DNA of 64,000 nucleotides from Mytilus californianus (GCF_021869535.1 NW_026262679.1:96286001-96350000); one strand, 5' to 3'. Positions 24,246 through 46,511 are shown, numbered from the stretch's first letter. Program-made: numbers and translations. Notes: generated by a model from the sequence alone, not told the origin.

Positions 24246-24413
24246 ACCTTCCTTATTTCGATTTTGTTTTTTGGATATTATATACGGACATCATGCGCAC
24301 TGCCTATTCCGTGCAGTAATTATAATTCGCCTGAAAACTACGTGAGATTACTGATACTTGAAAGGATATATTCCAATGTACAGCATTTAACAGAATCTTT
24401 AAAAGTAAAAACA
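24246..24413 (+). CDS. CK1 exon 2 (signal peptide + predicted helix A)
   Basis: ttttattttccag| TFLISILFFGYYIRTSCALPIPCSNYNSPENYVRLLILERIYSNVQHLTESLKVKT |gtaagt; 168 nt, the same length as in CK2/CK3; SPENY-RL-ILER and ESLK conserved. Not in the ORF track. Confidence 0.9.
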
Positions 24414-25196: not shown

Positions 25197-25301
25197 GGTG
25201 CATTAATTTCAGCCGAGCGTAAACAACAATTTGACGCTGCACTTCATGTAACTGGATTCCCTAACATATCATCTAGTGCAAACTGCTCTGTCTGTAATCA
25301 G
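25197..25301 (+). CDS. CK1 exon 3 (predicted A-B loop)
   Basis: tttttcag| GALISAERKQQFDAALHVTGFPNISSSANCSVCNQ |gtatgt; 105 nt, 21/35 identical to CK2 exon 3. Confidence 0.9.
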
Positions 25302-25400
25302 GTATGTAATTAATTATATTAAGAGTCATTTGTAGCATTTAGTATGAAATAATAACGGAGTTATGTATTCTTTTCAAGAACAGATATTTCGGTATATAAC

Positions 25401-25546
25401 CCTATTTCTGACACATGAGAGTGCAAATGCGATGACGGTTATTGATAATCTTATTTGTGACACATGAGAGTACAAATACTATGACGGTTATTGATAACCT
25501 CATTTCTGACACATGAGAGCAAATGGGGGATGTCGGTTATTGATAA
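25401..25546. repeat. ~48-bp tandem repeat x3 in CK1 intron 3
   Basis: Unit ctatttctgacacatgagagtgcaaatgcgatgacggttattgataat, repeated with substitutions. Confidence 0.9.
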
Positions 25547-26704: not shown

Positions 26705-26974
26705 ACAAAATGTTTTGAAGAGGACCGTAAACCACTAGAAAATTTGATGAGGTTTATAAACAGATATATGTCTTCAAGTTATTCTACAGAAATTGTGAGC
26801 ATTACAGCCGAGTTATCTGTAATTCGGGGACTTATGGGTGGCGATGTACTAAATCTATTAGATATATTTCAAATAAAGGATTTCAAGCAGAACAAGGATA
26901 CCGATTACCTTATTGCAAAGGATACTGTTGAATTTATCAATAAAGTTAAAAAGCGCTACGAAACACGTGTTTAA
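26705..26974 (+). CDS. CK1 exon 4 (predicted helices B, C, D); full protein 183 aa
   Basis: ttattattgcag| TKCFEEDRKPLENLMRFINRYMSSSYSTEIVSITAELSVIRGLMGGDVLNLLDIFQIKDFKQNKDTDYLIAKDTVEFINKVKKRYETRV*; clear paralogue of 43432-43695. Confidence 0.9.
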   Translation, partial: TKCFEEDRKPLENLMRFINRYMSSSYSTEIVSITAELSVIRGLMGGDVLNLLDIFQIKDFKQNKDTDYLIAKDTVEFINKVKKRYETRV

Positions 26975-26991: not shown

Positions 26992-27034
26992 CCTATAAGT
27001 ATTATGGGTAACTAAACATGTTCAGTATCTGAAC
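26992..27034 (+). promoter_or_regulatory. Twin 3' UTR triloop hairpins of CK1 (CDE-like)
   Basis: cctataa-gta-ttatggg (26992-27008) and gttcag-tat-ctgaac (27020-27034), conserved at 43706-43748; AATAAA at 27148-27153. Confidence 0.7.
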
Positions 27035-28223
27035 TTCAAGTATTATCTAATATTTTGGTAAATATTGTATAAAGATATATTTATATTTAACTTTATTGTA
27101 ATTTTTAAAAATTGTATGTACTGTAGAATATAAATGAATAACTGTGTAATAAAATATAATCTATATATGAATACATTTTTTTCACTTCTCATTGGTCTTT
27201 TTTTCCTTGTTTACGAATAAATGGTTCAATAAGCAGAGATACAGTTTGTCTAATTCACATAATGTTTTCCTTTGCCAAAAATATATGAATTAAAAAAAAA
27301 ATCGTAATAATGAAATGGACAATTGCCTTGTTGCGTTTTTAAATTACTAATATTTATCAATCAAGAAGCAAACTATCATTTTTCTTTTGGTCTGAACGAT
27401 CTCGACCTTATATATAGAAATTCTATTTTTATAAGCTACTGTTAACCATGTGTTTAATCGTTTTAATTAAATACAATATATGATTGTTTGCCAAACTTAA
27501 TGTATATCATTATCGTACCACATTAGGACATTTTGTGCAGATAAGGATATGATAAATATAAAGGCATATACATTATTGTATTTTTTCTTCTTAAAATAAT
27601 TCAAATTTTACATATTTGATGTAAAATAGACTTTTAAAAACTTGCATTTCATTGTTTATATTTATTAATATTATGTCTTTTGAGGGCATTGAAAATTTAT
27701 ACTTTTTATTACATGAATTTGTTGAGAATGGAAATGGGGAATGTGTCAAAGAGACAACAACCCGACCATAGAGCTGACAACAGCCGAAGGCCACCAATTG
27801 GTCTTCAATGCAGCGAGAAACTCCCGCACCCGGAGGCGTCCTTCAGCTGGCCCCTAAACAAATATGTATACTAGTTCAGTGATAATGGACGTCATACTAA
27901 ACTCCAAATTATACACAAGAAACTAAAATTATTAATGATACAAGACTAACAAAGGCCAGAGGCTCCTGACTTGGGACAGGCGCAAAAATGCGGCGGGGTT
28001 AAACATTTTTTTTGAGATCTCAACCCTCCCCCTATACCTCTAGTCAATGTAGAATAAAAAAAAGGTACAACAGTAAGCACAGTAAACCTCAGTTTAAGAG
28101 AAGTCCGAGTCCGATGTCAGAATAGGAAACAAAAGAAAATAAACACATAATACATAAATACAACAGACTACTAGCAGTTACTGACATGCCAGCTCCAGAC
28201 CTCAATTAAACTGATTGAAAGAT

Positions 28224-28310
28224 TATGTCTTCATCATATGAATATCAGGCACAATCCCTCCTGTTAGGGGTTTAGTATTATACCATCAAAAAATATATGA
28301 GAAGAACATA
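28224..28310 (-). promoter_or_regulatory. SECIS-like hairpin (form 2) 41 nt after the RT stop
   Basis: Minus strand: tatgttcttctcatat / atatgatgaagacata (helix I), TGAT..TGAT core, ggtataat/attgtgcc helix II, AAA, cct/agg mini-stem; the base before UGA is U rather than A. Confidence 0.65.
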
Positions 28311-28350
28311 ACCCGTGTCATGCCAACAACTGGTTTTAGAATAAATATGT

Positions 28351-29250
28351 TTAATTCCGACGCAAAGACCCTATAAGTGAATCAATATTAAAGCCAAAAT
28401 ATGCAATCTTTAATGACCTGACAACAGTATCGTAACTATATCCCTTCTTAATAAGTCTGTTTAAAGGTTTTGTTAGCTTTTGAGGTGAATACTGACATTT
28501 TTGTGCTTTGTAAAGAATATTACCATAAAATATTGGATGTGAAATACCCGAACGTATAAGATGTCTGCATGTTGAGTTATATTTACGAATGATGTCCTTA
28601 TACCGATGATAAAATTTAGTAAATGTTTTGACTAGTTTATGATATCGAAAACCCTGGTGTAATAATTTTTCAGTAATACATAAATTTCTTTCGCTAAAAT
28701 CTAATACGTTGTTACATACACGAGCGAATCGTACAAGTTGAGATATATAAACACCATAAGATGGTGACAAGGGAACGTCACCATCTAAAAATGGATAATT
28801 AACGATAGGAAATGAAAAATCATCTCTTTTATCATAATTTTTTGTATTAAGCTTCCCGTTAATGATATAGATATCAAGATCGAGGAAAGGACAGTGGTCA
28901 TTGTAAGTATTAGCTTTATTTAAAGTAAGTTCAACAGGATAAATTTCTTTAGTATACATACTGAAGTCGTCATTATTGAGAGCCAATATATCATCCAAAT
29001 ATCTAAAAGTATTGTTAAATTTTGTATCAGATGTTGTTTCGATGGATCTTTGCTGATTTTAGTCATAAATTGTAACTCATACCAATACAAAAACAGGTCC
29101 GCAATTAGTGGTGCACAGTTAGTCCCCATTGGAATTCCGATAACTTGACGATATACGGAATCTCCAAAGCGAACAAAAATGTTATCAAGTAAAAATTCAA
29201 AGGCAGATATAGTATCAAAGCATGTCCAATTGACATAGCTCTTTTGTTTG
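28351..29250 (-). pseudogene. Frameshifted reverse transcriptase fragment of the Penelope-like element
   Basis: ORFs 28920-29129 and 28351-28998 join by restoring one A at ~29020 (..HLIQKFNNTFRYLDD..); the 5' part of RT is missing. Confidence 0.85.
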
Positions 29251-29809
29251 TTGCTACTAAAAAATATATCTTATGTTTATGTCACTTAAAAGAAGAAAGA
29301 AAAAAACACTCAGAAATCAATTATCTGAACAAAACACACAAAACAAAAATAACATGGTCATAATTAGTTAGGCATCGTACAAGATCATTCCATCAATCAT
29401 TGTTGACCTCATTGTTTCAGTCTACGTCTTTGAGCTCGATTAAGCGGGAATTATGCTACAAAACATCTGTACATTACACATCTTCTTATATCTAATTACA
29501 GGCAATTTTGGTAAGCGTGGTGCATTCACATGATCGTGCAAGCTAATGCGTCCTTTTTTTTCTGCAATTGAATTGTACCTCCTTTGTGGGGGTATAATGG
29601 TAGACCTTTATCTACAAAAAAGGTTTTGTCACAAAATGTGTCATGTGACTTTAGAATGTCTATTTAGCAACATTCTTACAGAGCCTGCATACGGAGTATA
29701 TATATTTGCCATTTAATACGATATCCAAGAGCTTGTTTTTCCTATCATGATGTCCTTGATAGAGAATTGCTGTTAACAAAGAAGCTATTGAACCAATGGT
29801 TCCTAGTGG

Positions 29810-30000
29810 TAAAAAATATACCAAAAATACCGAACTCCAAGGTAAATTCAAAAAGGGAGGAGTCCATAAAAACTGACAAAATCACATGTTATCAACCAAA
29901 ACAAATGTCATATTCCTGACTTGATACAGACATTTTCAGAAGAAAATGGTGGTTTAAAACATGGTTTTACATCTAGCTAACCTCCCACTTGTATAACATT
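29810..30000 (-). mobile_element. Fragment of dispersed non-autonomous repeat (family of 34270-34610)
   Basis: aaaaataccgaactccaag..gtcatattcctgacttg..tacag is the reverse complement of blocks in 34400-34600. Confidence 0.6.
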
Positions 30001-30029
30001 TACATTTACAAAATTGGGTGAGCAACCCA

Positions 30030-30440
30030 AACAGACATGATAGATTAATGTAACAATGATTGGGAATCAGCAAACAAAACTGTGTAAACATACATCACAG
30101 ACATACAACACAACTGGCTAAAAAATTAAACAAACATATAAATAAATCTAACAAAGACGTCAAATAAAAACTTTATGTTGTTGATAGTATAATAACAAAG
30201 ACGCCGATAAAAACATTCTGTAGTTGATAGGACATACCATTTATAGTATACACTTTCTCGATAAAGCATTAGTTAAGTAGGTAAACAAAATTTAAACAAC
30301 ACCATAAAACCCTCTTGCGTTCGAATCGCACCCAAATCCACCAGGAACGCTTAAAGTAAACAAATGATAGCGGGATGCATATGTAACCTGTCACGTCAAA
30401 AGTCATACGACAAAAAAAACATTATAGCACGAAGACAAAT
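30030..30440 (-). mobile_element. Penelope-like 3' tail, inverted copy of 31855-32260
   Basis: Reverse-complement matches: gtcacgtcaaaagtcatacgac / gtcgtatgactttgacgtgac, and aatctaacaaagacg / cgtctttgttagatt. Confidence 0.65.
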
Positions 30441-30804
30441 AAAAGTAAAGTTGAAGTCATTACTGCGAATGTATTGAGGGCGCCACCATGATATGATTGG
30501 TCTTTATTGAATTTATATGTCACAGATGGCCCCGGATATGTTCCAATATTCGTAGCCATTCTCCTGTCCTCTTTTTCTCGATTGTATTATAATAGAATTA
30601 TCTCGAATTTGTACTTACTATTAGCAACAGGACGAAAGCCACATGTAGAGCGGGATCTGTCTCGGATTCATTAGAGAGTGGTCTAATTGCAAATAATCAG
30701 AATATTCAAGTGCAGTCATTGAACAGCTGTACCCGGATGTCAAGATACAACCGTCGTTTGCCTATTCAAATTGTTGAAATAACATTGATGGTACCAATTG
30801 TACT

Positions 30805-30848
30805 GCACCAGATGCACCTTTCGACAAATGTTGTCTCTTCAGTGATAC
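30805..30848 (-). ncRNA. Slightly degenerate type I hammerhead motif
   Basis: Minus strand: gtatca CTGAAGA gacaa-cat-ttgtc GAAA g gtgc a TC tggtgc; stems I and II pair, the second pair of stem III is G-A. Confidence 0.55.
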
Positions 30849-31554
30849 TCGAAGCTAAAATATTACTACTTTTAAATGTTAAACAATTGAACATCTATTG
30901 TTTTTAGTAGATTCTGATAGCCGAGTTCATCACACCATTTAAAAAGATTATCATTCCCTGTTCTTTTCAAAGATAGAAGTATAAACTGATGAAGAAGTCA
31001 TCAAAGCAAATAATTTGAATACACTGAAATCAACATTAATGTAGTGTACTATAGATTTCCAATAAAATGACATACGTACGTAACTCGACGAACGTACTTA
31101 ATGGGAACGGTTAATGTCAACCTTTTCATTTTGTTAAGTATGTCGCGCAAGTTTAAACAAAGGATTCCAAGACTTTTAAAATCAGACACTGGAATTTTCG
31201 CCCATATTAAATACTTTAATTAAGCTGTTTAATCATTAATCTTGAAATTTTTGTTGTTGAATGAAGTTTGATACCAATCAACATGATATTCTCCTCTAAA
31301 TAAAGGATGTTTGTCACATATGTATTAATTTTGAACCTAGTGTAGCCTTTCAGAGTATTGTTTGATATGTTTGTTTGGTGGTTTATATACAAATACAACT
31401 GTAGAATGATCGCTGGTGTCCGGATAGCTGATATTTTCAATTCCATTGAAAGATGCATTGAAAAGAAAGTCTAGACAAAATTCCTTTTTTTTTATATCAT
31501 GCTATGAGGCGGTCTTCTTTACTCATCGAACACAGAGTAGTGTGTTGATTGGTA

Positions 31555-32260
31555 GAAATATATCAACTAATACGATATTCAAGTGCTTGCAGCTGCTACT
31601 CAGGCTTTGTGAAACGTCATCGGTGTCTGAGCAAAAAATCAATGAGCCAGAATTTTGTGAAAGAACGTCTCGTCTTTTTTCTCAAAAAGTTAATCGGAAA
31701 GTACCAGGACCTTACAGATTAATTTTTAGTGTCTACTTCACAAATGATACAACATGGTCTTGAGTTATAGATTATGGATCCTCCTGAAATAATGTATCTT
31801 TTTATTTACTTTACAGTTTCCCTTTTATTTGTTTTCATGCTATGCTGCTTCTTTTGGTCGTATGACTTTGACGTGACTCGGTATTTATGCATCCCGCTAT
31901 CATATTTTTGACTTTGTGCGTTCCTGGTGCAGTTGGGTCCTGAGGTGCAATTCAGATGCAAGAGGTTGTTAGTGTTGTTTCCATTTTGTTTACCTTTGTT
32001 CTTATATTTTACTTATTTGAACTTTATCGAGAAAGTGTATACTATATAGGGTTTGTACGATCAACTTCATAAACTTTTTTATCGGCGTCTTTGTCTATTA
32101 ACCATCAGCTACAAAATGTCTTGTTGGCGTCTTTGTTAGATTTGTTTGTTTGGATTTTTTAGTCAGTTGTGTTGTATGTCTATGATGTATGTTTATACAG
32201 TTTTTGCTGCTGGATCCAGATTATTGTCACATTAACCTATTTTGTCTGTTTGGCTGAAGC
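31555..32260 (+). mobile_element. Degenerate Penelope-like RT C-terminus plus 3' tail
   Basis: An alternative frame gives QLIRYSSACSCYSGFVKRHRCLSKKSMSQNFVKERLVFFLKKLIGKYQDLTD, matching the RT thumb motif SQL(I/V)R(Y/F)ARxC. Confidence 0.7.
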
Positions 32261-34089
32261 AGATATACACATGACGGGTGAATTCCTTTGAGGCAGTGAA
32301 GATGAAGATACTCATATATTTTTTCATCATAACCAAATACCGCCTTGTATGGAAAAACCCATTATAAAGAGGGAAATCCGTTTAGCTATGAAGGATGTAT
32401 AAATTCGCATTCTTTCTGAAAGGAAGCATTCATGTAGATATGATGCTGCATGTAAGGAAAATGTAATACACACTCTCTGACCGTTCTGTATATGGCCTGT
32501 TGGAAGGCATTTTTTGTCTCTATCCAACAAATCCTAATTCCAAGCGACAGTCGAAATTTCTGTCCTTTTTTCGGATCAATCCATTGCAGAACTTACCTAT
32601 TTTGGTTATTATCAATATGTTCTCGTCTTAAATATACATGAAATATTTACTACTGAATTCAAGCAATCAGCGATCATGCAACCAATAAAAAACATTCATG
32701 TTTTTTCTCTGCTTCATATTACACATTATGTTTTGAATATAGATTTTCAAAAAAACATATTTGTAAATTGTAGGTTGCACAATTCTGTAACTATAGACAA
32801 TTCAAGGTCCCATGGGAACTTCTTTAACGGCATAAACTATGCCACTGGTACTATGACGTTTCGTAAAAAAATAAATTATCAAATGGAAAGATCACATGCA
32901 CTACTTTTTTTACAAAGGTCAAAATAAAGGGTTGTGCGGCATATTTTCAACATTTATATGCCTCAGACTTGTAAGAGTTTAAACCTACACTTAAGTTCTG
33001 TACTACCCATCCCCCTACTTTGAGTCTTCCTGTGAATTCAACATAATCACTATCAAATTGCATTTATACTGGTAAAATTCCCAAGTTGTGTATATGAAAT
33101 ATGGAGATCATATCTGATAGCCGGTAAATAAACAAAACAAAGTATCTATGAACATCAAATATCTCCCCGAAAGATGAGTTCTTTGTGAATCAGCAACACA
33201 GCGCAACATGTAATAACAATTAGTCGTTCTGCTATCATGACAAGGAGAATCATAAAATTGTTATCTGAAATACAGAGTGAGGACAAACTGAACGTAGTTT
33301 CACTAAACAGAACCGATTATAGACATACAGACTTTTCAAGTTGGTTTTTGAAGAAAAAACTTTATTTTACCGATTAATTAGTTATTTCCTTTGCAACATA
33401 TTGTGTTTTTTTGTCTTATGTGTCACAATTATATAATGATTTTTCTTTACAAATTACCTGAAACTGAACAGGTAGTTTGTTGAATTCTTTTATTTATAAT
33501 TTTAGTCATTTTACAAATGACTAGGTATTTTTAGTCATTTTATATAATGCCCTTCAATGTTAGGCATTTTATAAATTGCCTAAATTTTGAAAATGCCTCC
33601 TGTAAAATATTAATTTGAATTGTTTTTGTTTATATGGTGTGAACATAGCCTACTAATTTCATATTGACATATGTATGATTTTTTATTTGTTCTCGTAAAT
33701 GAGCAAGCTAGTGTAGGCTAATCGAAAAAATAATGTATTAAATTTACATGGTGATTTATAAATAGGTCTACATCGGCTTTACCCAAGGTGTCTTACTTCC
33801 AAAGAAAAATAGTCTTAGCTTGGCAGATCACAATATGAATTGACAGGTGTGAATTTGCGGTTATCTTCCCTACCCGTTATAATAGCTTTTTGATATAGAT
33901 CCCAATTGTGTACAATCTTTTTGTGATTGCTTGTTCTCTCTATGTAGCTGATTAGTAATGTTTGGTTTATCAAGTTAAACCACGGTAAACTACTAGAATT
34001 CTAAGATAAGAATGGTAGTTTTACTTTTATAGTCCTTAATGCTCTTCAACTTCGTACTTTTTTTGGCCTTTTGACAATAAGGATTCGAT

Positions 34090-34132
34090 CGTCACTGATG
34101 GGTCTTTTGTAGACGAAACGCGCTTCTGGCGT
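34090..34132 (+). ncRNA. Degenerate type I hammerhead motif (family of 58499-58542)
   Basis: cgtca CTGATGG gtct-tttgt-agac GAAA cgcgct TC tggcgt; core A9 and one stem III pair are mutated; flanks share aatgctcttcaactt.gtactt with 58450. Confidence 0.6.
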
Positions 34133-34269
34133 ACTAGGTATTTATACATTCCACCTTTGTGTTATTGTGCTATGGTCATTTTTGTATTCTTATCTTTCAT
34201 TTTTGTTTATGTACTTTGTCTATAGAGTGTCTATATACCATTTTGTTTTTCTTTGTTTAAATAGTTATT

Positions 34270-34610
34270 TGTATTAAAGTGATTAAGATTATAACACAAT
34301 GTTGACTGCTGTACCCTAACTTTTGACATTTTTACCTTTTATGTCTGTTTGTTTTGCTCACTCATTGTTGTCAATATAATGGAATGCTATATGACTGTGA
34401 TACAAGTGAGAGGTTTAGGTAGCTATTAAACCATGTTTTATGCACCATTTTCTATATAAGGAAATGCCTGTACCAAGTCAGGAATATGACAGTTGTTTTC
34501 CATTCGTTTGATGTGTTTGAGCTTTTGATTTTGCCATTTGATAAGGGACATTCCGTTTTTAATTTTACTTGGAGTTCGGTATTTTTGTTGTTTTACTTTT
34601 TGCAAACATT
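34270..34610 (+). mobile_element. Dispersed non-autonomous repeat (Helentron/HINE-like, class uncertain)
   Basis: cctgtaccaagtcaggaatatgacagttg..gccatttgataagggac..ggagttcggtattttt; related copies at 29810-30000 (-), 49440-49800 (+), 50255-50360 (-). Confidence 0.5.
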
Positions 34611-35675
34611 TGGACTTAAAGCAAAACATTTGAAATATTTTCCAAAAAGATGGCACTGTCCTTTTTAACAGAACATTCTTAAGATATATGGCAAGATGGC
34701 ATACATGCCCTTCCGTTTTCCCCATATACTCAAGTTTTATGCGGCCCAATCTACCTGATACAACACTAACTTTTTTAACAAACCTGATTTTAGATATTAA
34801 AGAACTAATATATTTACAGATAGTTCTTAAAAGTGCCATTTGTCCATGGTCATTACTAAATAACGTCTTTTGGTATTCCAGTCATGCATTGTAGCTCTTG
34901 ACATGCTGCCCCTGACATATTATTGTGACGACTGAATCAGATAAAGTATGCTATTAAAAGTATTAGAGCATGTGTTATCAACGAAAGAAGAAAAAAGGAG
35001 GTCAATAAGCTACAAGAAAGGATCCTTCATTGGAGGTTAACTTATCTACGAATTCAAACAGCCCGAATAATGTTTCCGTTATGTCGTAAGTGGAATGAGC
35101 TTCAACTGCATCGATAATAATCGTGTACAGAATCATTTCCTGAATGCTGAGATATTTGTAAATCGTTTTCGGGGTTTGGTAATGTAGTAACAAATGCATT
35201 GTGAGAACTTTGTTGATAAATGTAAGGTAAAACGCACATCTGGTGTACAAAGTTATATGCCCAGTATCTTTGATGAGTTTTTACATCTAAACATTATAAT
35301 CAGGGTTGTAAAATCAGAATGTTAAATAACACATAACGATATTCAACATGCTACGAATCAAAATACGCTTTCACACATTCAGGGTTACATAACCTTGTTT
35401 CCGATTTAGATACCTCTTACACATCGTACAGACCTATATATTGATATCATTTATATTTTTAAACATCTGTTTAAGGCGAATTTGGCGACTAAATCATAAA
35501 CGATATCTACTTCATACAAAAACTTTTCCCAACGTCAAGGAAAAAAACATGCATGATATTGATATTAGATCGTGTCACTCGTGACCACTAAATAAAACAA
35601 AAAAGAAAAAAAGAAAAGAGGCATTAACTATCAAACCATGAAAGATATTCAGTTTTATTTATTGCCGAGCTGAAA

Positions 35676-35706
<31 letters not shown>

Positions 35707-38504
35707 CTTTTCATTTATTTCAAAGCTTATTTTTAAACGTCCTTAAGAATCGGTGGTGGACAACTACTTCCATGTCCTGTTATTATGTAAATTGCACCAA
35801 ACAAACACTTCCTATTATTTTTACACAATGTCAGGTAAAAATTTATAAAGGTGTGATTTTTAATACGTAATAAGATATGTGGCTTGATTTCCTAGTTATA
35901 TGCAAAATATTTTAGAATATAAACCAATAAGGACTTCTTGTTTATTCAAATTTGAATGAATAAAGTCCAAGATAATTTACTCAGCAAGCGGGATTATACC
36001 TTTATCCTCTACGACTTTTCATTAAATGTCATATACTCCTTCAAGTACATATCCTATAGACCATTTACCCATTTATATCAATAACGGTCCAATGTGTGTG
36101 AAATAGTAGAAATGAAGGGATTCTTTTCCCTTTTGCAAAACAGGCTGATTGAATGACACTAACATTAAAACAAAATGACAGGAACCACTTTATAGAACCA
36201 GGAGTGCTCCTGAATGTGATAGACATTTCTAAATTCATCAATGGCATCCTGTGTATGCTTCATAACAATTACAAATCGGCTGCAAATCTCTGTCTACTCT
36301 TTTTGGAATCATATTGGTTAAGTAAATTATCCTGCAGTATAGTTGTTTACAAATAGTAAACGAAACATATTCAAAAGAACAAAATACATCCACAATTTAT
36401 TTCTTCGATGGCTTTTCTATGAAAAGGGAAATAGCTCTACGGAATAACATAACTCTTTTTAAAGAAACATATATCCCAAGAGAAAGAGCTTTAACCAATT
36501 TTCCAAAAAAATGATATAGATTTTAAGGGAAAATGAAAATTCCACCCTACCTAAAGAGGCCATTCAAAACATTCATATAAACAACTTGGGTTTTACTGTA
36601 CAATTTTCCATCTTTCACATACTTTAACGGTTAATGCCAGAAACAATCCTTACTTCTATTTCTTCGATTAAAATACTATAGTACCGGAAAATGTCTTTAA
36701 CGAACAGTTTAACTTTCGACATAATGATAATGTGACGTTTTGTTATCGCTACAATGAAGAAACTTTATGTGAGATAAAAGTAATAAAACTTTTCCTAAGA
36801 CTTTTAAAACAAGCCAAATTTATCACATTCATTTGAAGGATTATTTATAAACAAAAGTAAAAATACTTATTGATTGACACCGTATTGGAAGTTTCGCTTT
36901 AAATTGTTGAAAGAATAATCTGCTTTTCCACGGTAAAAATGTCATGAAACCTTAGAAAAAACACATCATCCTCCTTATATAACGTTGATATAATAAGTGA
37001 CTTGTATTTTTCATACTACTAGTATTATAAAACTATCCCAAGCTTTCATTTGTTTCTTGGTTCATGCAAATACAATAGTTTTTTTACTGGAAAATTCAGT
37101 ATTGTCGGTAAAGTGGGATACAATTACCTTGAACATTTTGCTGAAAATGATATTTGTTGACGGTATATGAATCAGATAATTCATATTTTAAGATGTTTCT
37201 TGTCGTATAACATATTTTTGGATGTCAATACTGCCCAATGAAAGACCCTACGGTCGGTCTATCATTTGATCAATCCTGACACCTTTCGGTATGTTATATG
37301 ACAAGAAAAACCTTAAAATATGCATTATTTTTAACTTGACATGTTGGATATAAAACAGTATATCAAGACATTAAAAATATAATGGAAAAGAAGTTGTTTG
37401 AAATTTATTATATTTATGATAAATAACGAATTTTATAAGGAAAGTTAAATCACATAAATAGCTTCACGTAGTTCGACAACATGAATTACAAACTTCAGCA
37501 GAATTGTTTTATGCTTAGACAGAACTCAAATTTAAAGTGAAATAAAAATTTAAACCGAACAAAAAAACATTTTTAAAATACAATCGCAAAAACTGAAAAT
37601 TCATTTGAAAATACAGAATGCATAATCTAGATGCACACAAAAACCATTAAAAAAAGAATTTCTTATTCTTAACAGGTTGCATAACTATGCTGAACAACAA
37701 AACCTAAATAATTGTAATGTTATCAACAATAATAAATTCCCGACACCTCATAGTAAGTTTTGATCTTTTCGTTCCATTTCAGGCTACGTTCTATTTCAAT
37801 AATTATAAAATAAAGTAATAAAGAGCATGCATTATTATTGATATTAGACCGTGTCAACCGCGAACAACTACATGCACAAATACAAATAAATAAAAGATGC
37901 ATGATCAAACTCAAATTGAGAGATAATCACTTTTATTGATGTGCGTGCTAAAGTACATTTTCACTATTAAATCTGATTTATAAAAGTCCTCAAGAATCGG
38001 ATGCAGAGCATTTATATTGAAACTACTTCAATACCCACATACTATGTAAATCATTACAAACAAATAGTTCCTCTTATTCATTCACAAATTGAGGTCAAAA
38101 TTTATAAAGATGTGATGTTTAACTTAATCGAAAGAAATGCTATGTAAATCATTACATACAAATATTTCCTCTTATTCATCCACAATGTCAGGTCAAAATT
38201 TATAAGGTGTGATGTTTCACTACGCCAAAAGAAATGTGGTTTGATTTCTTAGATATTTGCAAAATGTATTATAGGGTAAAAAAGAAAATCTTTTTTTATC
38301 TTGAAATAGCAAGGTTATTATTTTGAAATATTTTCTAAAGTAATGAATTAAATATAAAGTTTTATTTGAAAATTCATGAACAAATATTTCAGTATCTAGT
38401 TAAAAAATTGAAGAACGAAAAACAAATAAATAAACAAACAACAACAAAAAACCATAAAAAAAAAAGCAAAGAAGACAAAATTCTACATAGAAGTGGAGGT
38501 CTAT

Positions 38505-39046
38505 ATATATATATGTATATATACAACTCGTCTAAACATCAGCCCAACAATGTTAGATCTGTAAATTTGCTGTCGCAAATTCTATGTTCTTCCCTCGCCG
38601 GGATTCGAACTCATGATACTGAGATATCGTGACACCAAATCGCCTGCACTGTATCCGACGCGCTAGACCACACGACCACCTAGGCTTCACAAAATAAAGC
38701 TTTCGGTGGCCGGGTGTTACCTTTTCTCGTCAGTTTTAACCTAGCGTCGTAATACAGTACATGATATATAAGACATGAAGATGGAATTGTTACAGATCAG
38801 CTGAAATATCTATTGTAAAGGATCCTACAAATTAATGCAAGATACAGTCACAGAAATAATTATATTTATAAGTACGTCTGAACCAGTGACAACTCTACAA
38901 CAGATTTATCCATCGGATCACCAGCAGTGATGGTGATACATGGCTGTGTACATTCTGTATATACAACTCGTCTAAACATCAGCCCAACAATGTAAGATCT
39001 GTAAATTTGCTTTCGCAAATTTTTTGTTCTTCCCTCGCCAGGATTC
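38505..39046 (-). mobile_element. ~1.25 tandem units (period 440 bp) of a repeat with tRNA-derived head, inserted upstream of CK2
   Basis: atacaactcgtctaaacatcagcccaacaatg at 38521 and 38961; minus-strand A-box/B-box (ggtggtcgtgtgg..gagttcgaatccc); absent from the paralogous segments near 55140 and 62750. Confidence 0.75.
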
Positions 39047-39653
39047 AATACATATATAAGTTAATTACAAACATACATTTAAACTTATATGCAAAACTCA
39101 CAACCAAGCAACCAGTTAATCATCAATGACCTTCCAAAACAACTGAAAATTGTGAGTTTCTTTATTTTCGAATAAAAATTTCAAATCAGTTTCAATTCTT
39201 TTCTGCTGATTATTCAGCCTGACAAGTTTGTGGCGAACACGTGTTGAAGTGATACATACTTTAAATCATCTAACAGTTACTTTCCAAAACTTTAATTGAG
39301 TAATAACACAGTAATGTTCGTGAATAGGAGTTTCTTGCATGTTTTGGTGACGATATAATGACATGGAAGAATCAACATATTATGTTTTAAACGTATCTTC
39401 AATTACAAGAACCTTTATTTACATATAATATTTAGTAACTGCTGACGTGCAATTGTTGTTTTTAAAAGTGACAAGCTGTATCGGCTCTTTTACCAATTTA
39501 ACTTTTAGTTGGGTAGATTATTAAGATCAAACAGTAGTTCACTTATTTCTAATCTCATTAATGCATTCAGAAATATAAATCAAGGTAAAAACAAAACGTA
39601 AATGAATCGTATGCATTCCTTAAGGAGTGAGATTGGACAGTCCCTGAATAGTA

Positions 39654-40075
39654 TTGATTGTTGATTGTTGGTTGCTTAACGTCCAGTGGCAAATATTTCA
39701 TGAATATTCAGGACGCGAACAAAATTAACAATAAATACAATAGGTAGGTTCTGTAATAGAGGCGTCCGGGATTAAGGTCGGAGAAATTTAGACTGCCAAA
39801 GGAAATGAGGGTATATTGGATAGGGACCGAAATTTAGCCTTGCAACAGGTCACCTACGGACCCCTCAAATAGTTGTTGCAAGGGTTCTTAACGTGCAAAG
39901 AGCGTGGCACTCTCTTTACACAAGGCATCGGATTTAACGTCCCCATTCTGACCGGACGTGGCTGCAAATTTGTACATCCCGCACAGCCAAACGGACGCCC
40001 CACTTTAGCAAGGGTTTTACTGCCGGTCGGAGGAAGACCAATGGTGACCATAGTTCTATTCCCCAGTCACCCTTG
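39654..40075 (-). mobile_element. SINE-like element with (AATC)n tail
   Basis: GC-rich body with ggggacgttaaatcc and ggcagtaaaaccc..gggcgtccgtttggctgtgcgggatgta (related fragment at ~19150-19230 +); tail ttgattgttgattg; no clear tRNA head. Confidence 0.65.
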
Positions 40076-40630
40076 GGGGTCACTGAATAGTAAGTTCATC
40101 GTAAACTGTTGGTTAAATGCCAAGAATTAAACTAATGCTATGTATTATTCATTGAGAACAAGAACACATTTTGCTCTTTTTTTCATTAGAATGATTATAA
40201 TTGATTTTTTTTTAATTTTTCTTACTTTTAATACGTTTAGCTACAAACTTGTAAATTGTATTTTAATTCCTATGATGAATACATTATATAGTGTGACAAT
40301 GTGCGATATTCATTTAATTTTTTTTTTCTATATTAAAGTACAGTTTTGGTTGTTAAATTCAAGTGGAAATTTATGTTTTCGAAGTTCATTCTGCACATTA
40401 AATTTTTTTATGTAAAGCGGAAAAAGAGATGAAGCATTGGTTGGTTTTATGAAGCCATAACCCAGTTTACATGTAAATATCTCGCTCCTTATTCATGTCA
40501 AATTGTAACACTTCAGGTATGAGGAAATTTGCGGGAACTTTACAGAGGCATAGCTTAGTAATATTATAAAATATTTAGTAAAGATATTTCCCAGATATTT
40601 TAATATTACCTATATTGGAAATAAATTTGG

Positions 40631-40637
40631 TATAAAA
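40631..40637 (+). promoter_or_regulatory. TATA box of CK2 distal promoter
   Basis: TATAAAA followed by tgcttta..cacact..tatatcagttgt; same context at 56028 (+) and 61871 (-). Confidence 0.65.
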
Positions 40638-40712
40638 TGCTTTACATTGCTTCACACACTTCTATATCAGTTGTGTCTTGTTACGAGTTAGTCGACATAT
40701 TTAAAAGATACT

Positions 40713-40721
40713 ATGAGATCA
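40713..40721 (+). CDS. CK2 distal exon 1 (M-R-S)
   Basis: ATG AGA TCA|gtaagtgtcg, 82 bp after TATA; phase 0 to exon 2 gives MRSSFVFVSVLCVLYNVLPLFA-MP signal peptide. Confidence 0.75.
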
Positions 40722-41425
40722 GTAAGTGTCGTGTATACTCCTAGCTCTCTGCTGTTCGCCATAATTAGTTTAATACCTACTTTTAGTGAACACGCTCGTT
40801 TCAATTGCAATTTTATTTTGCTTCATATTTGTACGAAATAGGTATATACGTGTATCCTTATATTCGTTTTCAGTATTAAGGAAAATAATAAATCATTCTT
40901 TTTTTAAGATCAACACACAAGTTTTAACGGAAGAGATACATTTTTCTATATTGAGGAAGTTGATAGATGATTTGATCATTTCTAAGAAATTACATTTAAC
41001 AAATAACACCTACCATTTTTTTTAATATCGCGTTCATGTCCGTCATTTGTTATTAACAAATTAAAATGTTCCAAATGTATAAAGAAATAAAAAAAAGGGT
41101 GTCATAATTGTACGTTGTCTGTTGATCAATCTTTATTTACTACATAAATACATGTAGAATTGGCTAAATGAATATAGTATACATTTTGGACACACTACTA
41201 GGAACGAAAATTATTAGCTTATGGGAATTTTACAAATGGATATTGAAAAGACTAAAAAAGAGTAAATATAGAACCTAATGTTTCGTGAGTAAGCACATAC
41301 TTTTTTTTTATTTATTAAAGACATTCCCCATTTATTTTCGCTACAGGTGATATTTACAAAAAATATAATTTTGTATTTAAAACGTTTTACAGTAATTTAA
41401 ATTCGTCAACATATTTTTGGTTACA

Positions 41426-41434
41426 ATGAAATCC
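41426..41434 (+). CDS. CK2 proximal alternative exon 1 (M-K-S), donor disturbed by an extra gt
   Basis: ATG AAA TCC gt gtaagtgtcg; homologous to CK3 61156-61148 (ATG AAA TCC|gtgagtgtcg). Confidence 0.45.
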
Positions 41435-42420
41435 GTGTAAGTGTCGTTCATTTACTTATCCCTCTACCCTTAAACAGAAAAAGTGTCAAAACCTACAATA
41501 AGTGGAGCAGATATTTCTCATCTATTTCATATGTCACTGTCCTTATTCATTCAATTTAACCAAATTTCTCAAACACAACAAAATTAAGTGTCTTTTTTTA
41601 AGCAAGTTTGGTTATTAATAACAGTTTCTTATATGTATGAAATATGTCCATATTTTTGTCTGTTTTTTGTATATTCTAATCTTACAATTATTTTAAAATC
41701 TTATTAAAACTATCCACAAATTATTTTTTCTATTCTGTAACGAATACAATATTTACTTCCTTTAAGAGAGGGGAATGATAAATGAAATGATATTTTTAAA
41801 ATGACACGAATTGTTTAAATTTATATATTAAGTGGTGATAACAATCACTAAGTTCTTTCCTATCGAAATTAAAGTTTAAGTAGCTTACAATAATAATGTA
41901 TCTGAAGGAGACTCAAATGATGAACTTGTCAAAATGAAAATGAAAACCTATAAAAGCGCTGAACCTTTAATATATTTGTTCTGGTCTATTTTATGTTATT
42001 TAAACCTAAGATATCAAGATAATGATTAAAAAGAAGCTTGAATATTTAATGAAAATAATTGACATAAGTGTTTTTTAAAGATTATGTCACTTTAATAAGG
42101 TCTACAACCCTAAATTGTATCAGGTACTGATTTTGTAGTAACCATTTCACTTATCATTTATAATTTCGCATTGAAAAAGATTTTGATTAATGTCTCTGTC
42201 ACAGCATTGTGTATTAAAATATGTGTCATATCTAACAATCTTCACATACACTTACACATATATTTAGCGCATTCTATTAAAATTACCGCATTTGACTTTG
42301 ACATTGTATACAAAATTATCTCAATGATAGTTCTTTAATGTACGCAATAATTTGAGCTTTATATTACAATTTGTGTAGATTTTTCTTTTAATACATTATG
42401 TGTAACATATATCTTTTCAG

Positions 42421-42588
42421 TCATTCGTATTCGTCTCCGTTTTGTGTGTTCTGTACAATGTACTGCCATTATTTGCAATGCCAATTTCCTGCAGTACTGA
42501 GTCGCCTGAAAATTATATGAGATTACAGATACTGGAAAGAGTCCATATCCGTATAAAACCATCAGCCGAATCTTTGAAACAAAAAATT
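42421..42588 (+). CDS. CK2 exon 2 (signal peptide + predicted helix A)
   Basis: atcttttcag| SFVFVSVLCVLYNVLPLFAMPISCSTESPENYMRLQILERVHIRIKPSAESLKQKI |gtaagt; 168 nt. Confidence 0.9.
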
Positions 42589-42873
42589 GTAAGTTTAATA
42601 ATATATTTTATCTTGATCATGTGTACTAGAAAATTAACAGATTGATATTCGGTTAGCAATCCGATTTTGAATTGATGCGAAAAGAAAAATATTGTAGCAT
42701 TTAATTTACCCGAATTATCTGTTTCCTACATCAGATAAGATAGTTCTTTCAAATTTTAACAATTGTTTTGTGTGTGTGGTAAAAAACGTATCTAAGATTT
42801 AAACCCACTGAGATCTTATAAGGTAGATATATTACTTTTTGATTTATAGTTATATAAGAAAATATTTATTCAG

Positions 42874-42978
42874 GGTTCAGTCATCCCAGACTGGGTTAAA
42901 CCATACTTAGACGCTGCACCTCCGGTAACTGGATTCCCTAGCATATCTACAAGTGGAAACTGCTCAGTTTGTAATCAG
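42874..42978 (+). CDS. CK2 exon 3
   Basis: tttattcag| GSVIPDWVKPYLDAAPPVTGFPSISTSGNCSVCNQ |gtatgt; 105 nt. Confidence 0.9.
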
Positions 42979-43431
42979 GTATGTTGGTATCATAAAATAC
43001 CTTTGATAAAACAAAACATTTAGTAGACTTTGAAAAATCTTTATCAATAGTAATATTTAAAGCAAATGTTATGTTATTTCAATAAGGGTAAGCAATGAAT
43101 TGTAAAAGATAAATTATTACAGTTTTTAAATGCCATTATATCTTAAGAAAATAGCACCGATTGAAAATTATGTATGGAGACCGCAAAAGGTGATTCAAGA
43201 GTATGCAAAATGACAATATCAATTAGTTTATTCTCCCCGGTAACTATTGACCAATATACGTATGCATAACACATCGCCAAGAAAGAAAATTATCGGATTA
43301 TAAAGAAAACGAAAAATTAATCAACGATCAAACTCATAATGATGATCATCCTATACGGTTTATGTTTATAAAACTAATCATTGCCTTTTACCGGTATTGT
43401 TTTGCTGACAATTGTCTACTTTTTTTGATAG

Positions 43432-43695
43432 ATAAGTGGCTGTTTTAATAACGACTGTGAACCACTTGAAATATTAATGAGGTTCGTTCACAGCGAGATG
43501 TCTTCTCATTATACTACAGACATAATGACTTTAACAGCAGATTTATCTGTAGTTCGTGAACAAATGGGTTGTGTAGCAATACACATAACACCGCCAGTAG
43601 ATATATTTCAAGAAAAAGATACGGATTATAGAGTTGCAAAAGATACCGTTGAATTTATTGATACACTGGAACAACGTTACGCTACAGTATACTAA
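43432..43695 (+). CDS. CK2 exon 4; full protein 181 aa, putative secreted four-helix cytokine-like
   Basis: ctttttttgatag| ISGCFNNDCEPLEILMRFVHSEMSSHYTTDIMTLTADLSVVREQMGCVAIHITPPVDIFQEKDTDYRVAKDTVEFIDTLEQRYATVY*. Confidence 0.9.
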   Translation: MSGCFNNDCEPLEILMRFVHSEMSSHYTTDIMTLTADLSVVREQMGCVAIHITPPVDIFQEKDTDYRVAKDTVEFIDTLEQRYATVY

Positions 43696-43705
43696 AGAAG
43701 GTTGT

Positions 43706-43748
43706 CCTATAAGTGTTATAGGTAAACAAACATGTTCAGTATCTGAAC
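43706..43748 (+). promoter_or_regulatory. Twin 3' UTR triloop hairpins of CK2 (CDE-like)
   Basis: cctataa-gtg-ttatagg (43706-43722) and gttcag-tat-ctgaac (43734-43748); candidate poly(A) signals ATTAAA 43940-45 and AATAAA 43986-91. Confidence 0.7.
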
Positions 43749-46511
43749 CTTAGAAGTGGTATCTAATATTTAGATTCATATCTTTTTGTTGCCGCATGTA
43801 CAACATTTGCTGTACTGTAGATAAATTGTTTCAATAGAGTTTATAACAGGCATTATATTTATCGTAAGAAATGTTGTAAGATATCTGATTCTATATATTT
43901 TCATTACTGTGATAATTATTATAAAATTGTATTATTACTATTAAATCAAAAATTGAATGTTTACATAGCAGGTACCAAACACAAAAATAAAGTCATTACC
44001 ACATCTACAGATAAACATATAGTTTTCGATGACACGGGTTTGTTAAATATGCCAAGTTTAAATTTGATAATTTAAATTCATTTCAATAAACAATTATACA
44101 ACCAATGAAACAAACAATTTACTATGCTATGGATTATCAATTCTAATATGACGTTCCCCTTTCGCTTTGGTAACAAAGCCATGTTCTAATTCAAACAAAA
44201 ACATGGACTGCAGGTGATTGACGTCACAATTGAAATTGCAACGTCAGTTGGTGGTGCTCGCTATAAGATTTAAATAAATTCATTTTAAAAGTAAGTTTAC
44301 ATGTATCTGTTCATGTTTTATCTTGAAACGGGTAATTTTATACAACTTTTTTGCTTCATCAAAACAAAATGGCTGCCTTTCGAACATCTTTTATAGGTCC
44401 GCTTCGAAGTACAAAAGGTCTTAATTTTCCTATTAGGCATTATATTTTTCAACATTTTGCACCTCGCTTACAGTCGGTAAAAAGATATTTTCAAATACAA
44501 TGCCTACCCATGTTATTAAATTAAGCATTTATTTATTTCTTAAATATGATTAAATGATAAATAATAGGTTATCAAGAATGCTTATTGTTGTTCAAGGTAC
44601 TTAACATTCAATAATAAAATTATTCACTACTACCTCCATATATGTTTTACCATTCTTTACTGAAATATATCAGTTGTCTGGTGTTTGATGTATATTATAT
44701 TACGCATTATCATTTTGTATTTTTTTGTTTTGTGTTTTATAATTATTTTTTTTTACCTAACATAGTATTTGCATGTGAAACGGATTTTGGATTTTATTTA
44801 TGTTCTATGTACGAGTTGTGTTCTCTATTAGGTCAATATTAATCTTTACCTCTTTGAATAACTGCATATGAATGTGTCGTGTGTTATACTTTATTAATTT
44901 AACTAATAATTTTAATAAGTATCTTAACATGATATATCTCAAATTGAATTGTGCAAAAATTCGGACTCCTATATTATCAGAGGAAATGGAGTAACCAAGC
45001 AATATAAATATTACCTTTTGTAGTAAAATTTATTGTATGTTATATACATCAACATTTGCCAACGACCCAGTTTTGCACTTGTGTTAAACGTTCTAGAATC
45101 AACAGTGTCACTAGTAATATGATTTATTAGTGTACACAATTTTCATATTTGCCCTTTTCTTCATTCTTCAATGCAATCTAGTAATTGATTTTTTTTTGTA
45201 TATAACTAAATGTTTTAAACCTGTATTTTATGTGATACATTTCATATTATTTGTTTTACTTACATGGTGTTTTATAATTTATTTTTTAATAAACATATCA
45301 TATTTGCATATTACTTATGTATTGTGTAAATTATTTCTGAACCAGGAATTTTCTTTTTATCTTATTAAGGTATCCTCTTTTTCCAAGCCATATTACATGT
45401 AGACAGCGCTTATCGTCGTGGTAAATGTAGCAAAACATATTATATTTTTGGCTGAAATTTAACAATAAAAATGCTCAGTTATTCATAACAAAACAGTGCT
45501 GTAATTTCATCTTTTTAAAATTAGAAAATAATAACATAGTAAAAATATCGTTCCTTATTGATAGGATGAAGATAACAATAGAAAGATAATCATGATAAAT
45601 TCTAATGCAATTATTTTGTACCAATAGTTCTGATTGGATGACAATAAGCGTAAAATTCTCTATCTCCCTGTCTGTAACTAAGGAAGCCGACATTTTGAAT
45701 TCCGGAATGTATTGACATGTAATTTCTTCAATAATAAACAAAAAACTCACATTTTGCACCTAGAAATCTTCTTTTAATCATATTTCATTACATTCTGAAG
45801 CGGACAAGAAGCCGGAAAACGCCCTGTGTTTACGTTTGATGCCGGAAGAATACCTATGACGTCACCTAGTTAAGGCGACAAAGAAGATAACATCATTTCG
45901 CGTAATTTTTGTTTAAAAACGCGTCGCCAGGTAAACTAAATTTGCGACAGTAAAACTACCGATGGACGTCCGCAAAGCTTTAAATACAATACAGTTATCT
46001 CTAAAATAAAGCCGACAGTGGTTTACCGATGTTCAAATATCCTAAATCAATTAAGAAGGGCAAAATCTAGGTAACAAATAAAAACTGAGGGAATCGCATG
46101 AAAACCAAAAGGAACGAGACCAGGTGCGTCGACAGGGTAAGCATCTTTTGCTATCCATGCATCCATCGCCATCTGAATAAACACTCTGTCAAAATGTCAC
46201 AATCGGGAATAATACAAACAAAATTACGAGTCAGACGACTATACTGGTATATAAGACCGCACAAAAGTCACAAGTGATTTGAGACACCGACACACCTTAT
46301 CGGTCAACCAATTCGTAATGGTTACCATAAACTTGTGAAGTGTCGATTTCAGTCGCTTTTCTCATAACTCCAATAAGGACCACACACCTGTTAAAGTAGT
46401 CCGTAAAGTGATAATGCACGAGCGGAACGTATTAACTGAGATATGTTAACGCCATACGATAAGGCAGAGGGTATATTACTGCTGAGAAATGGGAATTTGA
46501 CAATTTGATAG

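Follow-up and report, generated by a model that had tools for sequence, protein, structure and literature searches.

Short RNA hairpins in the 3' UTR mark messages of vertebrate cytokine genes for rapid destruction, and the question raised by a locus of the mussel Mytilus californianus is whether an invertebrate gene family carries an element of the same build. The window analysed is a stretch of 64,000 nucleotides (GCF_021869535.1 NW_026262679.1:96286001-96350000), in which two genes, CK1 and CK2, encode proteins predicted to fold like interleukin-6-type signals. A preliminary description had pointed to a block of about 43 nt kept just after the stop codon of both genes, had read it as two tandem triloop hairpins under Roquin/Regnase-type control, and had taken this as independent support for calling the proteins cytokines. 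The block is indeed there and is conserved as described, whereas the interpretation placed on it is supported only in part: a CDE-like decay element (CDE, constitutive decay element) is our best reading, held tentatively, and neither the transcription of the element nor its reader protein has been shown.

The two genes and the block behind their stop codons

All features described here lie on the + strand. In CK1, exon 2 (24246-24413, 56 codons) encodes the signal-peptide core and helix A, and is followed by exon 3 (25197-25301, 35 codons) and by the coding part of the last exon (26705-26974, stop codon at 26972-26974); an upstream exon with the ATG was not found. In CK2 the corresponding parts are exon 2 (42421-42588, 56 codons), exon 3 (42874-42978, 35 codons) and the coding part of the last exon (43432-43695, stop codon at 43693-43695). 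These exons were delimited by reading splice sites and by tblastx and tblastn similarity between the two genes and to the M. edulis gene. The last-exon proteins of CK1 and CK2 are 53% identical to each other, and that of CK2 is 86% identical to the M. edulis and M. galloprovincialis proteins. A word-index protein search with the last exon alone gave no hit, because of its length window, whereas an exhaustive profile search with the CK1 last exon found 12 homologues; a Pfam search of all exons returned nothing above threshold.

The shared 43-nt block occupies 26992-27034 in CK1 and 43706-43748 in CK2 and differs at 4 positions. Its hairpin-2 half and its hairpin-1 half each occur exactly twice in the window even with 3 mismatches allowed, against 0.02 and 0.00 in shuffled sequence, and DNA-read depth over the block is only about twice that of the flanks, so that it is not a dispersed repeat. 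The conserved stretch runs further than first described, to 27059 in CK1 and 43775 in CK2, and the block is therefore part of a roughly 70-nt element that starts 10-17 nt after the stop. Between CK1 and CK2, nucleotide identity is 62% for the last 186 coding nt, 83% for the element and 54% for the next 80 nt of UTR.

Both copies fold as two hairpins. Hairpin 1 (HP1) is CCUAUAA-GUA-UUAUGGG in CK1 (26992-27008; 7 bp with one U.G) and CCUAUAA-GUG-UUAUAGG in CK2 (43706-43722), with folding probabilities of 0.54 and 0.50, respectively. Hairpin 2 (HP2), the core of the element, is GUUCAG-UAU-CUGAAC in both genes (27020-27034 in CK1 and 43734-43748 in CK2), with folding probabilities of 0.93 and 0.89. 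A third hairpin (HP3), missed in the preliminary description, is a perfect 6-bp stem with a UAU triloop in CK2 (43761-43775; AUCUAA-UAU-UUAGAU, folding probability 0.38) and is the true tandem partner of HP2. In CK1 the same region (27045-27059) has a weak form, CUAA-UAUU-UUGG, of 4 bp with a tetraloop, and in the triloop register it has a U.U mismatch.

A second shared block, TGTACTGTAGA, had also been described, and it is present at 27117-27127 in CK1 and 43811-43821 in CK2; however, an 11-mer with one mismatch allowed is expected about once by chance in the window. It reads as two UGUA motifs (UGUA-C-UGUA) about 20-30 nt before a poly(A) signal: in CK1 it lies about 20 nt before AATAAA at 27146, while for CK2 the orthologues have AATAAA about 25 nt downstream, at a site that reads AATAGA in this genome. 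From the role of UGUA motifs we infer a likely polyadenylation upstream element rather than a part of the decay element.

Pairing and covariation in homologous 3' ends

Homologous 3' ends were retrieved from seven further gene lineages or species, comprising M. edulis, M. galloprovincialis, other mussel runs and hydrothermal-vent metagenomes. In total, nine distinct 3' ends from five paralogue groups, and at least two identified species besides M. californianus, carry the element at the same place after the stop (the retrieved members of the family are designated below by L numbers). Conservation above coding level holds in many paralogue and orthologue pairs: between L013 and L014, for example, identity is 72% for the coding sequence, 93% for the element and 54% for the distal UTR.

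Covariation across orthologous UTRs had been named in advance as a test of the hairpins, and broken pairing in orthologues as grounds for abandoning them. On an alignment that was not fitted to structure HP2 pairs in 54 of 54 cells, 4 of its 6 pairs show changes on both sides, and G.U pairs, in two sequences, fit only the sense strand; 0 of 500 shuffles reached the observed percentage paired or the covariation score, and slid registers pair at 55% or less. The loop is UAU in 8 sequences and CAU in 1 while the stem changes around it. RNAalifold predicts HP2 and HP3 on its own. In a 260-nt context the folding probability is 0.42-0.94 for HP2, 0.35-0.54 for HP1 and 0.00-0.39 for HP3, although thermodynamic z-scores of the whole element are modest, from -0.7 to -1.9.

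The stem of HP2 has 6 bp in CK1, CK2, L001, L013 and L017 and 7 bp in L006 and L007; L014 and L007 have one basal G.U, and L018 has 6 bp, extendable to 9 with a U.G. HP3 has 6 bp in CK2, L013, L014 and L018 (the last with a G.U), 5 in L017, and 4-5 with a tetraloop in CK1, L006 and L007, in which it is degenerate, and its folding probability is low in L017 and L018. The pairing of HP1 fared less well: its loop becomes GUAA or a 10-nt loop in distant homologues, one orthologue has a U.U mismatch, and only the basal CCUA/UAGG pairs are kept. Realignment with a covariance model did not improve the register of HP1 and HP3 in the distant sequences, and these hairpins are therefore described sequence by sequence.

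The element is not present throughout the family. A covariance model of the element (R1) found no further copy in the window, including near a partial third gene, CK3, nor in the family members L003, L005, L011, L012 and L021, and a relaxed hairpin scan confirmed that these five have no Y-R-N triloop hairpin near the stop; a tree of the last exon is a polytomy and does not tell whether they lost it. An Rfam scan of 24000-45000 at E up to 10 gave nothing on the block. A search for related loci with a narrow alignment found no relative in JGI metagenomes or, with P0002 as query, in viral contigs. An exact DNA pattern (HP2 plus the HP3 core) gave two hits in metagenome contigs, L015 and L016, but both lie in unrelated sequence with no CK protein nearby and are chance matches.

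Comparison with Roquin and Regnase targets

The relaxed consensus of the Roquin CDE (Braun et al., 2018, PMC6294493) is a stem of 6-8 bp with a YRN loop; U at loop position 3, conservation with compensatory changes and a folding probability above 5% define the high-confidence set of those authors, and tandem CDEs act more strongly. HP2 satisfies each of these sequence-level criteria in stem length, Y-A-U loop, covarying pairing and folding probability, and HP3 has the UAU loop in CK2-type genes, but HP1, with its GUA or GUG loop (purine-pyrimidine-purine), does not fit. Perfect hairpins of this consensus are rare in this genome, 8 being found on the + strand of the 64 kb, and three of them are these. 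Two features of single copies weaken the fit: a basal G.U pair, present in two HP2 copies, lowered activity in tests of the UCP3 CDE, and the 9 bp to which HP2 of L018 can extend is a length reported as inactive for the TNF CDE. The strict TNF-type consensus (Leppek et al., 2013, as summarised in PMC6294493), with three Y-R pairs in the apical stem forming a 3' purine stack, is not fulfilled, since the apical pairs of HP2 are G-C, A-U and C-G and its 3' arm reads CUGAAC; what is shared with the TNF CDE is a triloop hairpin with a Y-R-Y loop in a cytokine 3' UTR. For Regnase-1 targets, the Y-R-Y loop rule is obeyed by HP2 and by CK2-type HP3, but translation-dependent cleavage was not measured, and on the loop alone the assignment goes neither way.

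Among the closest counterparts is the CDE of human CSF3 (G-CSF), formerly called the stem-loop destabilising element, a 6-bp stem with a UAU triloop (GUUUAA-UAU-UUAAAC) in the 3' UTR of a long-chain helical cytokine mRNA, likewise conserved across species and with a high folding probability. The closing pair is A-U in CSF3 and G-C in HP2 (U-A in L018), and CSF3 has a single CDE, listed at position 351 of its transcript NM_000759 in the supplementary table of Braun et al., whereas the mussel genes have two or three hairpins within 100 nt of the stop. Roquin binding and decay are shown for CSF3 and not here, and we do not claim that the elements are homologous. In the tandem CDEs of UCP3 and TM2D3 and in the multi-stem-loop element of Nfkbid, several small triloop hairpins similarly lie close together and are reported to cooperate, with AU-rich stems whose sequence is free as long as it pairs; those are mammalian genes, mostly not cytokines, and the mussel cluster includes a hairpin, HP1, outside the YRN rule. 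Outside vertebrates, Drosophila Roquin represses a TNF CDE reporter in a CDE-dependent way (PMC5303829), and in Caenorhabditis elegans RLE-1 (Roquin) binds an ADE-like stem-loop in the ets-4 3' UTR through its ROQ domain and works with REGE-1 (Regnase), for which an RCE stem-loop is needed (PMC9371910). The latter is an invertebrate 3' UTR with two conserved stem-loops serving the Roquin/Regnase pair and is the precedent that the system works outside vertebrates, although its loop is a hexaloop of ADE type and its target is a transcription factor rather than a secreted signal.

The cytokine call itself holds at fold level. An AlphaFold model of the M. edulis orthologue (pLDDT 87.5, pTM 0.84) has as Foldseek top hits IL-11, G-CSF, IL-6, LIF and growth hormone, and all 50 Foldseek hits listed, as well as the first 32 hits of a VIA-wide search, are helical cytokines or hormones of the long-chain four-helix up-up-down-down fold, with Z of 10-11.8 for IL-23p19, IL-27p28, IL-11, CLCF1, IL-6, OSM and LIF. 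These Z values are below the caution line of 13 used for helical bundles, there is no sequence-level match in Pfam, and receptor binding was not examined. The presence of a CDE, in contrast with what had been proposed, does not by itself support a cytokine call (Braun et al., 2018, PMC6294493).

Possible readers and alternative explanations

In our preferred view, which we hold with somewhat less than even confidence, the block is the core of a structured cis-element at the start of the 3' UTR of a mytilid gene family encoding secreted proteins predicted to fold like IL-6-family long-chain helical cytokines. HP2, helped by HP3, would be read by shape by the ROQ domain of the single invertebrate Roquin and/or by the Regnase (ZC3H12) orthologue, and this would recruit CCR4-NOT deadenylation or endonucleolytic cleavage, keeping the cytokine mRNA short-lived and its expression transient. 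The sequence, its conservation, its RNA pairing on the sense strand, the fit of HP2 to the relaxed CDE consensus and the predicted cytokine fold come directly from the analysis, whereas the presence of the block in the mature mRNA, the identity of the protein that reads it and decay as the outcome are inferences; no mussel Roquin or Regnase was examined, and neither binding nor Roquin-dependent decay was assayed. Two other readings of the sequence were discarded. A STAT-type TTC...GAA DNA site in HP2 has a spacing of N7, not N3-4, and L006 and L007 lose the motif while keeping the pairing; an AU-rich element is suggested only by an AUUUA in the 3' arm of CK2 HP3, which is not conserved in CK1 or L018.

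Among the alternatives, the one that survives best, although we consider it less likely, is that the structured element is real but is read by a different, so far unknown RNA-binding protein, and would then control translation, localisation or stabilisation. Covariation and loop conservation show only that some reader sees a small hairpin, and the conserved base of HP1 beneath its non-CDE loops suggests a composite element with parts outside the CDE definition. On the other hand, the Y-A-U loop preference of HP2 is the one reported for conserved CDEs, and the loops do not fit three other well-known small stem-loop sites, the iron-responsive element (CAGUGN), Smaug (CNGG) and the histone stem-loop.

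A role in 3' end formation, in which the hairpins and the UGUA block together would set poly(A) site choice or termination for a very short 3' UTR, is very unlikely. The element does sit 60-120 nt before UGUA motifs and AATAAA in CK1 and in the Mytilus CK2 orthologues, but poly(A) upstream elements are linear motifs, not covarying triloop hairpins, and the distance to the first AATAAA or ATTAAA varies widely among homologues, from 66 nt in L007 to 127 in L018 and 262 in L014, with none within 600 nt in L006.

It is about as unlikely that the block belongs to no mature mRNA, because the genes are silent or pseudogenes or the transcript ends before it. Absence from the mature mRNA had been named beforehand as an observation that would overturn the proposal, and on this point the data settle nothing: the one RNA run mapped, from the same study and with about 6% of it read, gave no read on CK2 exons or UTR, no run on record as RNA contains the stretch, five runs of other organisms that share 5-24% of its words are only presumed to be RNA and were not mapped, and all retrieved contigs are genomic. 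However, the reading frames are intact, the orthologues are annotated in M. edulis and M. galloprovincialis, purifying selection on a structure points to an RNA, no poly(A) signal lies between the stop and the block, which falls 10-60 nt after the stop, and inducible cytokine genes are commonly silent in bulk tissue.

Conservation without RNA function, through gene conversion in the cluster of CK1, CK2 and the partial CK3 or through a DNA palindrome bound by a dimeric protein (each hairpin being a palindrome at DNA level), is already close to refuted, because the element is kept in orthologues and in paralogue groups with about 30% protein identity from other mussel lineages, stems change by compensatory pairs while the loops stay, G.U pairs would be A.C mismatches on the other strand, and the flanking UTR is at noise level.

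Natural RNA targets of invertebrate Roquin are almost unknown: Sgromo et al. (2017) stated that they were unknown, and the one we found since then is C. elegans ets-4. Molluscs were also not known, in the literature that could be searched, to have IL-6-type helical cytokines. The element also provides a compact RNA motif (model R1, or HP2 alone) with which mussel and other lophotrochozoan genomes could be scanned for further short-lived immune transcripts. A bolder possibility, which we regard as unlikely but not excluded, is that the link between IL-6-family-type helical cytokines and triloop-hairpin (Roquin/Regnase) mRNA decay is ancient and was present already in the common ancestor of molluscs and vertebrates rather than invented in vertebrates, in which case the mussel CK genes would be the first invertebrate cytokine mRNAs under this control and the first natural triloop CDE targets known for an invertebrate Roquin. 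A covarying CDE-like hairpin in such a gene gives a concrete, testable case for asking whether rapid-decay control of cytokine messages predates vertebrates, and whether it is inherited or convergent.

The conserved block, its genes and their homologues

The two blocks lie exactly where the preliminary description placed them, at 26992-27034 behind CK1 and 43706-43748 behind CK2, and its observation was therefore confirmed. Over 43 nt they differ at four positions, one in the loop of hairpin 1, one turning U-A into U.G, and two in the spacer, and each copy folds into the two hairpins described. Each half of the block occurs twice and only twice in the 64-kb window, even with three mismatches allowed, whereas shuffled sequence gives 0.02 and 0.00 matches. 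In DNA sequencing runs, depth over the block is about twice that of its flanks, while neighboring transposon-like stretches reach thousands, so this is not a dispersed repeat. In particular, 44043-44436 and 45422-46012 are high-copy repeats, in which summed contig depth in the DNA runs reaches thousands to 100,000, against about 80 in the flanks; they are the only parts of 40300-46200 with RNA reads and are likely transposable elements. The conserved stretch is longer than had been described, running from 26992 to about 27059 in CK1 and from 43706 to 43775 in CK2. Between CK1 and CK2, identity is 62% over the last 186 coding nt, 83% over the element and 54% over the next 80 nt, the last figure being noise level for this AT-rich DNA. 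The same pattern holds for other pairs; for example, the M. edulis gene compared with the homologous locus L014 gives 72%, 93% and 54%.

Comparison of the two regions reveals three shared coding exons per gene, at 24246-24413, 25197-25301 and 26705-26974 in CK1 and at 42421-42588, 42874-42978 and 43432-43695 in CK2. Exon 2 starts inside a signal peptide, so that a short first exon with the ATG lies further upstream, although it was not found. The last-exon peptides are 53% identical, and intron 3 of CK1 contains a 49-bp tandem repeat of 3.1 copies (25396-25546). A third, partial copy lies on the minus strand (59709-59542 and 59230-59126), with an exon 2 that is 88% identical to that of CK2 and an exon 3 that is 71% identical. 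The splice donor after its exon 3 is destroyed (CAT/TA instead of CAG/GT) and no last exon or hairpin element follows within 1.5 kb, so it is probably a truncated pseudogene. Elsewhere in the window, a weak match to the type I hammerhead ribozyme was detected at 34089-34132 on the plus strand (20.9 bits against a gathering score of 34, E 0.79).

Searches of Pfam and a word-index protein search found nothing. However, an exhaustive profile search with the two last exons found 12 relatives, and a second search found 14, among them unnamed proteins of Mytilus edulis and M. galloprovincialis; the DNA around ten of them was retrieved. Nine distinct 3′ ends carry the element at the same place after the stop: CK1 and its orthologue (L001/L002); CK2 and its orthologues in M. 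edulis (L013) and M. galloprovincialis (L017); L014; L006 and L007-L010; and L018-L020, which come from hydrothermal-vent metagenomes and so are probably from deep-sea mussels. The proteins of the last three groups are only about 30-45% identical to CK1. A tree of the short last exon is unresolved, and five family members (L005, L011, L012, L021 and L003) lack the element. Among these, L003 (2956-3477 of ENA ERZ6864376 contig c_000003828886, 41 kb; also L004 from Logan SRR29182338) encodes a CK homologue of 158 aa (P0002, E 7e-20) that lacks introns 2 and 3 and has no hairpin element after its stop. It sits in a gene-dense stretch of orphan ORFs of 127-360 aa on both strands, with short gaps and no Pfam match, and one neighbor gave only weak zona-pellucida-like leads in the ESM Atlas (score 0.84). 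The nature of this contig was not settled, but it looks like a large DNA virus, a giant mobile element or another compact genome that carries a captured cytokine gene.

Structure of the three hairpins

Covariation across orthologous UTRs had been put forward beforehand as a check on the proposed structure, together with the condition that orthologues should not break the pairing. We counted pairs on a MAFFT alignment that was not fitted to any structure. In hairpin 2, all 54 cells pair and four of the six pairs show changes on both sides (G-C to A-U, U-A to C-G, C-G to U-A, and G-C to U-A), while two sequences have a basal G.U. None of 500 column shuffles reaches the observed percentage paired or covariation score, and sliding the partner by one to three columns drops pairing to 55% or less. 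RNAalifold predicts the same helix without being told. Furthermore, G.U pairs would be A.C mismatches on the other strand, so the structure belongs to the sense RNA. In 260-nt context the hairpin has a folding probability of 0.42-0.94. While the stem changes, the loop stays UAU (8 sequences) or CAU (1), which points to a reader that needs both the shape and the loop.

A third hairpin was missed in the preliminary description. In CK2, M. edulis and L014 it is a perfect 6-bp stem with a UAU triloop, AUCUAA-UAU-UUAGAU, whereas L018 has AUCCAG-UAU-UUGGAU, with U-A changed to C-G and A-U changed to G.U, and M. galloprovincialis (L017) keeps 5 bp. Its folding probability, 0-0.39, is lower than that of hairpin 2, and in CK1, L006 and L007 there is one extra U and the region forms 4-5 bp with a UAUU loop.

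Hairpin 1 is the weakest part. Its loop is GUA or GUG, which is purine-pyrimidine-purine and not Y-R-Y. In L006 and L007 it becomes CCUAG-GUAA-UUAGG or ACUAG-GUAA-UUAGU, in L018 it has a 10-nt top, and in M. galloprovincialis it has a U.U mismatch; only the basal CCUA/UAGG pairs persist, with one C-G to A-U swap and one U.G. The distant homologues L006 and L007 also have an extra small hairpin between hairpins 1 and 2 (AGUGG-AAAA-UCACU at 2042-2057 in L006 and GGUGU-CAA-ACACU at 608-620 in L007), where the Mytilus-type genes have an unstructured A-rich spacer.

The second shared block, TGTACTGTAGA, reads as two UGUA motifs and lies about 20 nt before AATAAA in CK1 and about 25 nt before AATAAA in the Mytilus CK2 orthologues. 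UGUA motifs act as upstream elements of poly(A) sites, and we infer that the block is part of the polyadenylation signal; UGUA is kept, in varied form, in the orthologues.

Comparison with Roquin and Regnase decay elements

The relaxed CDE is defined as a 6-8 bp stem with a Y-R-N triloop, to which a high-confidence set adds conservation (compensatory and G.U changes allowed), a folding probability above 5% and U at loop position 3; tandem CDEs have also been shown to repress more strongly than single ones (Braun et al., 2018; PMC6294493). Hairpin 2 satisfies all of these requirements and CK2-type hairpin 3 most of them, whereas the strict TNF consensus, with three apical Y-R pairs, is not fulfilled. 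Such hairpins are rare here, with eight on the plus strand of the whole window, three of them in these two UTRs. The human G-CSF CDE listed by the same authors, GUUUAA-UAU-UUAAAC, has the same build as hairpins 2 and 3, and a 2026 review gives Y-R-Y triloop stem-loops as the shared target class of Regnase-1 and Roquin (PMC13732794).

Invertebrates have one Roquin gene and generally one ZC3H12 gene (PMC11172303). Drosophila Roquin represses a TNF CDE reporter and a CDE mutation abolishes this effect, although the authors noted that natural invertebrate targets were unknown (PMC5303829). No paper on the pair in molluscs was found, and no mussel Roquin was examined here. In C. elegans, RLE-1 binds an ADE-type stem-loop in ets-4 through its ROQ domain and works with REGE-1 (PMC9371910).

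Predicted cytokine fold and reading of the element

The M. edulis CK2 orthologue was modeled with AlphaFold using a 20-row family alignment, and the model has pLDDT 87.5 and pTM 0.84, with long helices at 15-43, 78-121 (kinked) and 139-162. Every one of the 50 Foldseek matches listed against the PDB is a long-chain helical cytokine or hormone, namely IL-11, G-CSF, IL-6, LIF, growth hormone, leptin, CNTF and IL-23p19, with TM-scores reaching 0.63 but E-values of only 0.01-0.9. An exhaustive search that does not use Foldseek puts 32 cytokines first among 48,161 chains, with IL-23p19, IL-27p28, IL-11, CLCF1, IL-6, OSM, IL-12p35 and LIF scoring Z 10.5-11.8; this is under the caution line of 13 for helical bundles, but the ranking is very clean. 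The cytokine call therefore stands at the level of the predicted fold and does not depend on the hairpins. The reverse argument made in the preliminary description, that the hairpins support the cytokine call, is weak.

The interpretation of the hairpins as Roquin/Regnase-type decay elements is only partly supported. Presence of the block in the mature mRNA had been named in advance as a point on which this interpretation could fail, and the RNA run of the same study gave no read on CK2 exons or UTR; however, only about 6% of that run was read, the two runs that contain the stretch are DNA, no run on record as RNA contains either 3′ end, and every retrieved contig has intron sequence before the last exon and is therefore genomic, which leaves the point undecided. 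Accordingly, whereas the conserved structure itself rests on the sequences analyzed, transcription of the block, its reader and its effect are all inferred. A different reader of the same hairpins is the main rival to the decay reading. Nevertheless, a conserved, sense-strand RNA structure after the stop of these genes is close to certain, and that it is a Roquin/Regnase-type decay element is, although tentative, the best single reading.
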